NCBI GenBank assembly: GCA_965603825.1
Contig: CBFDEM010000006.1
Span: 186,001 to 250,000, forward strand
Direction: 5' to 3'
DNA length: 64,000 bases
From: Blepharisma stoltei ATCC 30299
Taxonomy: Eukaryota; Protista; Ciliophora
The notes beneath the pieces are model-generated. The model saw only the letters and a list, made by a program, of their open reading frames with translations, had not been told where the DNA came from and did no database searches. The position numbers and the translations under genes were made by a program. Position 1 is the stretch's first letter, and each line of letters begins with the position of its first letter. Positions 833 through 62,968 of the stretch are shown here, one piece after another.

Positions 833-2231
833 TAATTATAGTAGGCGATTCAATTAATTTATCCTGCCAGCCACAGGCTCTCAATTCAAGCATGTCCTAA
901 ATAATTTTTACCAAAATCAAGAACTTCACTCTTGAATTTGCCGTTAGACCACGGTCCATTATTTCTTTAAGAGTATTAACTACCGCGTTTGTTTTGGATA
1001 CATACTTTTCATTTTCATAAGCAGCACCTCCAGCTGTTAGCATCAAAACAGCTCCTTCTAATTTGTCATCATTAAGGACCAAACTAACAAAATCAGGATT
1101 TTTAAATGTCTCTTTAAAATTCGGGCTTATCAATTCCATAAGGCACATAAAAATTACTTTAGGAGGTATAAATCCAGCCTTAAATAGCTCACCAATAAAT
1201 CTTACCATCCCAAGGCTTTTTACTTTATAAGCAGAATCCCCTTTATGGTCTGCCTCACTCATTCACATTTCTTCAAAAGATTCTTGGCAAACATTCAGCA
1301 GCATTTTTCTAAACAAACTATCTTGTGTTCTCTTTGAAGACTCCACCTTTCCTCCTGCTAGCTGAAAATCCAAGTACGCATCAGTCAGATATTTGCACAG
1401 GTCTGCATACATTCCAACATATTTTTTCTCAAAGCAAGCTTTTTGGAAAATTGCGTCTGCTAAAGCCTCTAAATATTCCTCATCCAATTTAGAAATTTCA
1501 AATAATTCAGTTTTCAGCTTATCAAAATTTCTCATAGTCAGCTTATTCAAAATTATTTTAATGTCACAAAGCTTTTTCTCTTTTGTTGATTTTTCTGTGT
1601 TGATTTTCTTTGTGTTCTCAAGTGCACCCTGCCTGATCTTTTTCTGTGTCTCGTCTTCTTCTGCGCGCCAATTAAATTTGTAATTAGTGTTACCTAAAAC
1701 CCGCCTCTCTGGCTTTGGCTCATTTCGTCTCCTTATTCTTACAATTTGAATAGGCAAGACCCAGGATAAATCCTCATCGCCTGCCTTTCTTATATCATCT
1801 TCACTATATCTTATTTTTGCTTTTGCAACAGAAATCTGGGAAAAAGTAGACCCAGTCCCCATTGGTGTGTATTCATGTGAAGTAATATCCTCTTCAATAG
1901 TAGACAAACCGCCTTTGAAGTGATTTTTTCCATTTGCAGGGATTTTGGTTTCTTCGTTGGTGTTATCAATTTCTTCTTGTTTAAAAGCTGGAGAAAGCTT
2001 TCGTGGAGGTCGTTCTTGCTCCTTATTTTCATTAGCAGACAAACTTTTATTATCCTGGGTGTCTATGTCAGAAATGACATTGATTTCTGGCTGAGTTTTA
2101 GATGAAATTGAAAGAGAAGACAATAAAGCTGCTTTTGCAGCCTTGTAATCTCGGAATTCAGGCTGGCCTGCGTCCGGAGGTGAAGTATTTGTACGAGCAG
2201 GCTTACGTTCTTTGGTGTTAGACGCTGACAT
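825..2231 (-). CDS. eIF4G-like MIF4G-domain protein; TGA=Trp at 1263-1265; intron 897-911
   Basis: MIF4G motifs ILNKLT..NF, IFQKACFE..Y..MYA.LC, FRKMLLNVCQESFE and RFIGELFK. After the 15-nt intron the frame gives RVKFLIL-DMLELRACGW. Confidence 0.88.
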
Positions 2232-59847: not shown

Positions 59848-60519
59848 ATGATGTCAGATGCCAACGAAATTACTGATTTTTCTGAGTTACCTCACAAGAA
59901 AATAAAGCTTGAACCCACAGAAATTAATTCCAATGATGAGATAAGAATACCTGCCAACGTATCTGATTTAAACGAAAACTCCGAAACCGCTTCGTCCTCT
60001 AACCCACAAGAAGAAGTAAAAGCTTTAAATGACATTAAAAGAGAAGAAAATAGCTTAGAAGATTATGGAGACATAAAAAGGGGCTCAATTTGGCTGGGGA
60101 CTTTTTGCAATAAGCTCCATGGCTCAGTAGCTTGCACTTATATGATAAAATCGTCTAATGGTAAAGTTCTTGAGCAGATGACGAATATTTATTACAAAAA
60201 ATCCAAAGCTTTGTCAGTAATAAAACACTTAAGGAGAGCCATAAAAGTCTGTGGCCGTCGGTCGATGGTCCATATTGACATATGTACAGACAATGACGTA
60301 GTTTTTACCAATTTTGACAAGTTTAAGAAGCTGAATCCACAGTTATTAGAGGAAAGAATGAAGACAAGTGATTTATTTGCCAAATTTAATATGACTCATA
60401 AGTTTAAATGAGTTTTTAAGCCTGCTAATGTAGAAGCAAATAAAATTGCTAGAGAAGAGTTTGAAAAAAGAGATAAAGAAGAGTTGTCTGACTATTCTGC
60501 ACATGAGACTAATCCATAA
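59848..60519 (+). CDS. RNase H-like fold protein, probably catalytically degenerate (paralogue A)
   Basis: Frame extends through TGA at 60409 to TAA at 60519. Pattern of three strands, helix, IDICTDND and KFK-W-VFKPANVEANKIAR mirrors type-1 RNase H (TDS...WV...N..AD.LA). Confidence 0.65.
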
Positions 60520-60731: not shown

Positions 60732-60821
60732 AAAAATAGTTTTTGCGCCAGGAGAGGTCTTGAATTTCCAACACCCGAGGGACTTGAATATATAAACGAA
60801 GTATCTCCTTAGCTTAGAACT
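60732..60821 (-). ncRNA. Predicted Pol III structured small RNA, copy 1 (90 nt, divergent)
   Basis: AGUU...GCUAAGGAGAUACUUC...CCUCUCCUGGCGCAAAAACUA-UUUUU; terminal stem AGUU/AACU; upstream element at -54..-65. Confidence 0.72.
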
Positions 60822-60874
60822 GAATATATATATTCATTTTAATTTAAATAATAAGCTTATTATCTTTATTTTTA

Positions 60875-60886
60875 TTATGGGATAAG
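60875..60886 (-). promoter_or_regulatory. USE/PSE-like element CTTATCCCATAA (copy 1)
   Basis: Identical 12-mer at the same spacing upstream of all three RNA copies; resembles the CCCATAA core of ciliate snRNA upstream elements. Confidence 0.7.
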
Positions 60887-61371
60887 AAATCTACACTTTA
60901 AAAATATGGAACTATGATTATTAGAGCATCTATGTGGCTTTAAATGACTAAATCCTATTATTAGTTACCTTAGTCAGAATAGGATTTAATTATAATTAAG
61001 AAATGCTGAAATATTTTAACGAAGCTATAACGTCTTAAATAAATATCACCAGAAGATCAGCAAAATTCACTGATCTCAGGGATTCATAGAGCTGAACTTT
61101 CCACCTTAGATTGCTTGAAATAATTGTAAAAGATAATGCTAATTACTTAAACCGATAATAGCAAGTCTACTAGCATTTTATTTTCATCTAAGGATATCAG
61201 ACAGATCAGATTATTATGAGCTTCTTTATATTTAAGATAAGATCATGCTATTAAAACTCTAAAATTGCATTTTTGAACTCTGCATACTAGAGCAATATCA
61301 CTCTGAACAGCAAGGCACAGGCCTTTAGAATCTAAGTAATTTTCAATCTTTTAATAGCTAAAAGGGCAGAT

Positions 61372-61457
61372 AAAAAGCTATTGCGCCAGGAGAGGTAAGT
61401 TAAGCCCGAAGGCATTGATCTTGAATAAATTCAGAAGTATCTCCTTAGCATTGAACC
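61372..61457 (-). ncRNA. Predicted Pol III structured small RNA, copy 2 (86 nt)
   Basis: GGUUCAAUGCUAAGGAGAUACUUC...GCC-UUCG-GGC...CCUCUCCUGGCGCAAUAGC-UUUUU; TTTATAAA at 61478-61485. Confidence 0.75.
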
Positions 61458-61509
61458 ATCTATAATTATCCCAACCCTTTATAAATTTTAATGAATTTAA
61501 TGAATTTTA

Positions 61510-61521
61510 TTATGGGATAAG
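61510..61521 (-). promoter_or_regulatory. USE/PSE-like element CTTATCCCATAA (copy 2)
   Basis: Lies at -53..-64 from the inferred start 61457. Confidence 0.7.
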
Positions 61522-61950
61522 TAAATATTGATGCATCTGATAAAAGTGGATATCTAATAATCAGGAGTTATTTATAATCAAGAAATGTTGAAATATTTAG
61601 CGGACGTAATGTCCTAAATAAATATCAGCAGAAGGTCAGCATAAATCACTAATCTTAGGATTCATAGAGCTGAGCTTTCCACCTTAGATTGCTAGACATA
61701 ATTGTAAAAGATCATGCTAAATACTTAAACCCATAATAACAATCTACTAGCATTTTATTTTTATTCTAAGGATATCAGATCAGATCAGATTATTATGAAC
61801 TTCTTTATATTTAAGATAAGATCATGCTATTAAAACTCTAAAATTGCATTTTTGAACTCTGCATACTAGAGCAATATCACTCTGAACAGCAAGGTACAGA
61901 CCTTTAGAATCTAAGTAATTTTCAATCTTTTAATAGCTAAAAGGGCAGAT

Positions 61951-62036
61951 AAAAAGCTATTGCGCCAGGAGAGGTAAGTTAAGCCCGAAGGCATTGATCT
62001 TGAATAAATTCAGAAGTATCTCCTTAGCATTGAGCC
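61951..62036 (-). ncRNA. Predicted Pol III structured small RNA, copy 3 (86 nt)
   Basis: Same as copy 2 except U3->C, which converts a U-G pair to C-G in the terminal stem. Confidence 0.75.
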
Positions 62037-62088
62037 ATCCATAATTATCCCAACTCTTTATAAATTTTAATGAATTTAATGAATTTTA

Positions 62089-62100
62089 TTATGGGATAAG
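62089..62100 (-). promoter_or_regulatory. USE/PSE-like element CTTATCCCATAA (copy 3)
   Basis: Lies at -53..-64 from the inferred start 62036. Confidence 0.7.
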
Positions 62101-62230
62101 TAACTATTAACGCATCTAATAAAAGTGGGTATCTTATAATAGGAGTAATTTATATTGAAAGGCTAATAAATTTAGCATTGAAATTATTTATAAATAGAAA
62201 TTACTATTTTATTCGCACTTAATATATAAA

Positions 62231-62968
62231 TTATAGGCTTCCTTCTAATTCATTTTTTTCTTCTTCATTAGAAGACGCAGAAGATTCATCAGATTCATTC
62301 TTAACTAATCTCTCAAACTCATCTCTAGCAATCTTAATGGCCTCCGCATTGGCGACTTTCAGCACCCATCTTCATTTGCAAGTCATTCCCAAGCGGCTTA
62401 AAAGTCCATTAGTTTTTAATCTTTGCTGATACAACTGATTAATCCATTTTCAAACTTTATCAAAAGTCCCAAAAATTTTATCGTCGTCTGTATACATATC
62501 AATATGAGTTATTGACTTCTGATGGCATCGCTTCACTGCTCTTCTAATATGTTTCAATAAGGATAATGCTCGCGATTTTTTGTAGTAAATATTCGTTACC
62601 TTATCGATAATCTCATTATTGGGAGATTTTATTAAATAAGTGCAAGCTATTGGACCTTGGAGCTTTTTCATATAATATGCGAGATATACAGAGCAGGTTT
62701 TTATGTATTTTGATATGTCTTCGTCTTCTTTTTTTATAGGAGGAGGGAGATCTTTAGAGGTTTTTCGGTCTGAAGCATCAAGTTCTTCAATGACGCTTGA
62801 ATTTGACGAGTCGGAATCGCTAAGGTCTAAAATTTCTTTGCTGGGGTGTTTTTCATGAATTGGCTCTGTAGGCTCGATTTTTGTTTTCTTTTGTGGAGCA
62901 CCAGGGCTTGGATGGTAAATTTCATCGAAGATTTTTCGCTTTGAAAATTTACTATTATTAGATAAAAA
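62231..62968 (-). CDS. RNase H-like fold protein, probably catalytically degenerate (paralogue B); start codon unresolved
   Basis: Frame is open 62968-62231 with TGA=Trp. Collinear with paralogue A (PQKKTKIEPTE vs PHKKIKLEPTE; ACTYLIKS; TNIYYKKSRALS; IDMYTDDD; WVLKVANAEAIKIARDEFE). Confidence 0.65.

Follow-up and report, generated by a model that had tools for sequence, protein, structure and literature searches.

A multi-copy family of Pol III-type small RNA genes in Blepharisma stoltei as candidate divergent vault RNAs

Introduction

What kind of RNA is encoded by three short genes that sit as a cluster between two convergent, mutually paralogous protein genes of the ciliate Blepharisma stoltei? 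A first-pass annotation had described them as a three-copy family of Pol III-type structured RNAs, similar in shape to vault, Y and stem-bulge RNAs and possibly a novel class. We followed up this proposal in the window, a stretch of 64,000 nucleotides (contig C6, positions 186001-250000), and in genome searches covering the 41.46-Mb, 64-contig assembly, in which UGA codes for Trp.

In searchable papers, validated vault RNAs come only from deuterostome animals (vertebrates, sea urchin) and trypanosomatids (PMC7058938, PMC9326685). According to a 2013 survey, finding them elsewhere would call for structure-based searches (PMC3762200). Since vault RNAs have so far been reported from animals and trypanosomes only, a ciliate family would add another eukaryotic branch, the third, to their distribution. 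We found no report of a ciliate vault RNA in the openly searchable literature, a scope outside which most subscription papers fall. RNA models in the B. stoltei genome annotation were confined to tRNA, rRNA, SRP and spliceosomal RNAs (10.1101/2021.12.14.471607), so that the present genes have probably escaped annotation.

Three related genes in the window

The minus-strand genes of 86-90 nt ending in T5 are present as annotated (Table 1). They share a 16-nt 5' core and a 15-nt 3' core, identical in all three, and the closing stems AGUU/AACU, GGUU/AGCU and GGCU/AGCU pair as described. The identical upstream box CTTATCCCATAA was likewise recovered at all three USE/PSE sites, together with a TATA-like tract at -28/-29.

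Table 1. Features of the gene cluster, in window coordinates; +1 positions are inferred from the stem.
Feature	Position	Strand	Remarks
Vault-like RNA gene copy 1	60732-60821	-	90 nt including T5; +1 inferred; Rfam Vault 26.9 bits, model positions 1-99; family model R1 73.7 bits
Vault-like RNA gene copy 2	61372-61457	-	86 nt including T5; R1 93 bits; one base different from copy 3
Vault-like RNA gene copy 3	61951-62036	-	86 nt including T5; Rfam Vault 17.2 bits, full model; R1 95 bits; 61660-62033 covered by a contig of a presumed-RNA run
TATA-like box copy 1 (-29)	60843-60850	-	Similar TATTTAAG tract at equal distance in U6
TATA-like box copy 2 (-28)	61478-61485	-	
TATA-like box copy 3 (-28)	62057-62064	-	
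USE/PSE copy 1, TCCCATAA core at -61	60875-60886	-	Motif and position as upstream of U6
USE/PSE copy 2, core at -60	61510-61521	-	
USE/PSE copy 3, core at -60	62089-62100	-	
579-bp tandem duplication	60960-62110		Two units holding copies 2 and 3 with promoters and non-coding spacers; repeat families D1, D2, D5

The two units of the tandem duplication are 98% identical over 300 nt and 91% identical in their spacers, which hold no notable open reading frame. The single base that separates the two genes keeps its pair (U-G to C-G), as against a difference of ~9% in the spacers (Fisher p 0.007). The first 170 bp downstream of both genes are also nearly identical, so that gene conversion could account for the low divergence between the genes. 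The first-pass annotation had taken the elements kept in copy 1 amid its diverged flanks as a sign of selection. Copies 2 and 3, as units of a tandem duplication, are not independent evidence of it. Set against the divergence of its flanks, copy 1 can be regarded as the informative copy for selection: its identity with copy 2 is 84% in the gene, 64% upstream and 55% downstream. Copy 1 also retains a B-box-like ATTCAAGAC immediately 5' of the 3' helix strand.

The genes on either side (59848-60516, plus strand, and 62234-62925, minus strand) are convergent paralogs with an alignment score of 430 and without a Pfam match; on visual inspection alone, their C-terminal halves resemble RNase H.

A family of at least 23 copies

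Genome-wide, the supposed three-copy family grew to at least 23 copies on eight contigs (C6, C7, C8, C12, C50, C53, C56 and C63). Searches with the 16-nt core (up to two mismatches), a two-motif pattern and a covariance model found 22 of them, on which all per-copy counts given here are based, and the C8 copy was found by the pattern only. The two-motif pattern gave 19 matches versus none for the reversed control. UACUUC is present in all 22 copies and GGCGC in 21, and every copy ends in a T4-T7 tract. The length to the T-tract ranges from 58 to 158 nt, with nearly all of the variation falling in a variable centre of 18-120 nt. Two elements singled out in the earlier description, AUUCAAG and the YUCG hairpin, are indeed present in the window genes. 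They do not extend to the family, where AUUCAAG occurs in 3/22 copies and the hairpin (by the pattern GCC-UUCG-GG) in ~10/22, and both are best seen as subfamily traits. A tree of the copies is mostly unresolved.

Four copies are devoid of the USE (C6:267k, C12, C56 and one truncated C63 copy), and these promoter-less or truncated copies are probably pseudogenes. The C56 copy (C56:347685-347851; L034:1360-1526, minus strand) combines a 120-nt A-rich centre and an absent USE with an intact helix and T6. Matches to the 5' core only, on C36, C39, C44, C51 and other contigs, miss the 3' motif and were rejected as copies; C44, C56:689k and C6:294k could represent 5' fragments.

A selfish or neutral, SINE-like Pol III repeat with little function would also display many copies, tandem duplications of recent origin and several decayed members. 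However, USE and TATA accompany 18/22 copies, and retroposition would not carry them. The promoters travel with the copies, which argues for spread by duplication at the DNA level. In addition, we saw no poly(A) tails, another organism has a homolog (see below), and the paired ends have been kept amid diverging flanks and centres. Altogether, we judge a SINE-like origin extremely improbable.

A probable U6-type promoter

The USE lies at -59 to -61 in 18/22 copies, with the TATA-like tract near -28 in most. At a background rate of 1.2e-4 per base, the chance of finding the USE in a 3-nt window is 3.6e-4. The upstream box is not restricted to the vault-like family and is common to snRNA genes, as the U6 gene has TCCCATAA at -61 and the two U2 genes have TCCCTTAA at -56. 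In Stentor the USE reads RTCCCWTA, and in ciliates the spacing between USE and TATA selects the polymerase (PMC8287931). The family upstream box can thus be identified with the heterotrich snRNA promoter element, positioned at the U6-like (Pol III) and not the U2 geometry. The exact 12-mer at four further sites has no Rfam RNA downstream, and these sites were discarded; the functional core is TCCCWTAA.

Internal promoter elements are much reduced. The A box is degenerate, and the B box, which animal vault RNA genes require and which helps to define them, is absent from most copies; by Rfam alignment, only copy 1 of the window has a B-box-like element among the Blepharisma copies. The earlier description, of Pol III-type genes for small structured RNAs preceded by an upstream element, is supported. 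We hypothesize that SNAPc and TBP recruit Pol III as at U6, which would yield oligo-U-ended RNAs of 60-160 nt, and that the internal B box was free to decay because the promoter is external.

At the otherwise intact gene on the plus strand at C6:266945, the USE (~-60; L062:7007-7015) reads AGGGATAA, a 5-bp micro-inversion of TCCCT, which probably inactivates the promoter.

Structure and covariation

The consensus fold of the copies consists of 13 pairs: a 4-bp closing stem, an internal loop that holds part of the conserved GGCGCA, and a 9-bp helix in which 4 bp and 5 bp are separated by an invariant bulged A, followed by the unpaired UACUUC. The 5' and 3' ends thus pair through a bulged helix, the panhandle feature of vault RNAs. 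Among the copies, 96.5% of the paired cells are complementary, compared to 92.0% for shuffles and 37-55% for slid registers. Changes on both sides occur in 5/13 pairs, including the closing stem, for instance G-C to A-U in three copies (C50/C53) and A-U to U-A in four (C63). This covariation represents few independent events among related copies, and the shuffle control overstates its significance. Folding of single sequences does no better than shuffles (z -0.2 to -1.0), and the panhandle structure for this reason rests on covariation.

Similarity to Rfam Vault and a metagenomic homolog

Vault RF00006 matches copy 1 over the whole model at 26.9 bits (E 0.015 in 8 kb). Full-length matches recur on copies 1 and 3 and on four of the five C63 copies (18.9-26.2 bits), and scores overall span 17-27 bits, so that no Blepharisma copy attains the gathering threshold of 34 bits. 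The RF00006 seed is animal-based. No other Rfam family recurs over the genes. The Vault alignments display the same register of GC-xx-bulged A-helix, UACUUC and GGCGC, and include compensatory departures from the Rfam consensus. A genome-wide RF00006 search returned one match only, on C64, which lies inside coding DNA and was rejected as chance.

The first-pass annotation had proposed that a blank Rfam search would support novelty and a significant hit refute it. The search was not blank, since Vault came out on top over its whole model; the gathering score was not reached, and the proposed refutation was missed narrowly. Novelty as a class is not supported: the full-length Vault match recurs below threshold, the vault motifs form the family core, and vault proteins are encoded in the genome. 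We place the family beside RF00006 as a variant and not as a member, because both formal points, the score (below 34) and the internal B box (missing), go against membership.

Further evidence comes from L073, a metagenomic homolog (JGI Ga0163179_10197345, 991-1075, minus strand) with the same core, a canonical B box, T5 and a 5-bp closing stem of its own, GAGAG/CUCUC. It scores 32.9 bits on Rfam Vault over the full model (E 5.9e-5), still below 34. On a model built from Blepharisma only it reaches 49.5 bits, a score that is inflated and partly circular, as L073 was selected by a family-derived pattern. We regard L073 as a true, independent homolog that bridges the Blepharisma family and Vault. 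The remaining 10 of 11 metagenome pattern matches were GC-rich DNA without stems or a T-tract and two matches in prokaryote genomes did not fit the family model, and all were rejected; the pattern search of viral contigs gave none. We also looked for homologs by synteny, via the RPL7, PP2C and TROVE orthologs in the related heterotrich SRR24908292 and in heterotrich-like contigs, and found none there; the surroundings of RPL7 differ in gene order and the PP2C contig stops 1.5 kb beyond the gene, hence this does not amount to absence.

A cysteine-rich ORF beside L073 contains, over 305 codons, six in-frame TAG but neither TAA nor TGA. One of these TAG aligns with Gln in a relative, and TAG in this ORF probably encodes Gln, while TAA may or may not be a stop. 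This one ORF suggests a ciliate-type code in the source of L073.

Could the vault likeness be convergent, arising in an unrelated ciliate-specific Pol III class from an A-box-like start, pairing of the ends and a U tail? The Rfam scores all fall short of the cut-off, most copies have no B box, and the U6-type promoter is unlike the type-2-plus-upstream promoter of animals (PMC7058938). Nevertheless, UACUUC, GGCGC and the bulged A reach beyond promoter boxes and keep the same register with compensatory changes, and L073, with its B box, links the family to vault RNA. The known ciliate family, the Arisong RNAs of Oxytricha, Stylonychia, Paramecium and Nyctotherus, resembles the present genes in being multi-copy and in having an upstream PSE. 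By published description, it is set apart by its coaxial dumbbell, 3' GUUC tail and Pol II-type 3' box (PMC3177221), in contrast to the panhandle and T-tract end of the Blepharisma family, and we rejected Arisong identity on account of fold and ends. Convergence thus appears very unlikely.

Other identities were rejected as well. ARAGORN reported 0 tRNA genes in six copy-holding loci, with no cloverleaf that would point to a tRNA or tRNA-derived RNA, and the 22 copies contain no template of at least 9 nt for CCCTAACA repeats, as expected from the noted lack of tRNA and telomerase signatures.

Vault and TROVE proteins

The genome encodes vault proteins and TEP1-type TROVE proteins. Three major vault protein (MVP) genes have open frames of 830-870 aa, and the two that were scanned both contain all Pfam vault domains. 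Three TROVE genes encode proteins of 590-606 aa, homologous both to Tetrahymena p80 (35% identity, E 6e-130; cluster containing Q94818) and to the N-termini of animal TEP1. They are Ro60-sized and do not have the long C-terminal part of animal TEP1. In a copine-like gene we noted a recurrent neighbour, located within ~50 bp after the p80-type TROVE gene at two paralogous Blepharisma loci and in the related heterotrich sample SRR24908292 (L005, L006 and L082 taken together).

In mouse, TEP1 is needed for the stability of vault RNA and its loading into vaults (PMC2193651). The trypanosome vault RNA was recognised from a bulged helix at its ends, from transcription by Pol III and from its binding to TEP1 (PMC9326685), and it sits in vaults of three MVP paralogs (PMC9326685, PMC12547018).

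The most likely reading is a real, selected, multi-copy Pol III RNA family that would constitute the vault RNAs of a ciliate. More specifically, we consider it probable that these are divergent vault RNAs whose genes no longer have the B box and depend on a U6-type promoter, and for which binding by p80/TEP1 is predicted. The three stand-alone p80/TEP1-type TROVE paralogs would bind the conserved panhandle and stabilise the RNA. Like TEP1 in mouse and trypanosomes, they would also bring a share of the RNA into vaults assembled from the three MVP paralogs. Specificity or partner binding would probably lie in the variable centre, and the copies would have spread together with their promoters by DNA-level duplication. 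Bases that stay fixed across this distance without a B-box promoter role (UACUUC, GGCGC and the bulged A) point to the TROVE-binding determinant.

The same genes could be vault RNA homologs by descent that now function largely apart from vaults, as free RNPs with p80 whose role resembles that of Y RNA, either in RNA quality control or as an adaptor to a nuclease or other partner recruited by the centres. The TROVE proteins are Ro60-sized, 23 diverse copies exceed structural need, only 5-20% of vault RNA resides in the particle in vertebrates, and Ro60 and Y RNA were not found, as in trypanosomes with their proposed Y-like role (PMC9326685). Against this, the MVP genes are intact, and, to go by a title cited in PMC3762200, TEP1 needs no more than its p80 region to associate with vault RNA and with the particle. 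We regard a role mostly outside vaults as unlikely, and it differs from the reading as vault RNAs in emphasis only.

A bolder extension would make the family a ciliate repertoire of vault-type RNAs, the natural ligands of p80. More than 20 Blepharisma paralogs, each pairing a fixed p80-binding handle with a central domain of its own, would then serve as interchangeable adaptors that guide p80/vault RNPs to different partners or RNAs. We find this conceivable yet doubtful; if true, it would mean a role beyond any described for vault RNA. Ciliate p80 was once taken for a telomerase subunit. The Blepharisma family suggests a natural RNA partner for it, allows a direct test of which RNA it binds, and offers a better search model for other protists.

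Comparison with known vault and Y RNAs

The family shares with animal vault RNAs (RF00006) the size range, panhandle, bulged-A helix, UACUUC, GGCGC, variable centre and oligo-U end, as well as clustered paralogs and a genome that encodes MVP and TEP1-type proteins. In contrast to them, its copies score only 17-27 bits, the B box is mostly lost and the A box degenerate, USE and TATA stand at U6 spacing, the closing stem has only 4 bp, and the predicted partner is a stand-alone p80 of ~600 aa and not full-length TEP1. The at least 23 copies compare with 1-4 in experimentally validated species (PMC7058938).

Compared by description, Trypanosoma brucei vault RNA (TBsRNA-10) is likewise a protist Pol III RNA with a bulged terminal helix, in an organism with three MVP paralogs, a TEP1-type TROVE protein and no Ro60 or Y RNA (PMC9326685, PMC12547018). 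It differs in having one gene and proven binding, whereas Blepharisma has many genes and predicted binding.

Of the likenesses first suggested, that to vault RNA survived and that to Y RNA did not. Y and stem-bulge RNAs (RF00019) also have a type-3 Pol III promoter, an end-paired bulged stem and TROVE-type binding partners. Unlike Y RNA, the Blepharisma copies bulge an A and not a C, match no Rfam Y RNA, and, as noted at the outset, none of them carries the Ro60 GUCCGA site. Genome searches, in which only the best candidates were scored, revealed no Y RNA and no separate Ro60 gene, and in PDB the Blepharisma TROVE proteins did not match Ro60 structures. With neither a Ro60-binding helix with a bulged C nor a Ro60 gene found, we rejected Y RNA identity.

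Expression and minor observations

Contigs from four presumed-RNA runs cover the flanking protein genes and leave most intergenic DNA uncovered. Low-depth, unstranded contigs lie over ~61648-62033 (copy 3) and 61014-61227, with none over copy 1; short RNAs are lost in such data. These contigs extend ~300 nt downstream of copies 2 and 3, which fits read-through past T5 from both genes, to the extent that strandless contigs can tell.

Low-depth presumed-RNA contigs also overlap the two tandem spacers (61623-61702 and 61044-61124, minus strand) with weak matches to the Dictyostelium C/D snoRNA DdR16 (25.6 and 19.2 bits; cut-off 70). One spacer has the 14-nt guide and D' stretch, with no evident box C, and the match may be due to chance or to a snoRNA that has decayed.

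Just 5' of the 3' helix strand, copies 2 and 3 carry ACUUACCU, which we take to be identical to the U1 sequence that pairs with the 5' splice site. It is confined to these two copies (UUACCU occurs in 11/22) and was rejected as a meaningful element, being probably due to chance.

Lastly, contig 10 of run X2 (365 nt) contains the RNA 3' end at 61949-61990 with two mismatches and then continues into sequence absent from the examined loci, which suggests read-through from one more copy or from the allele of a second strain.
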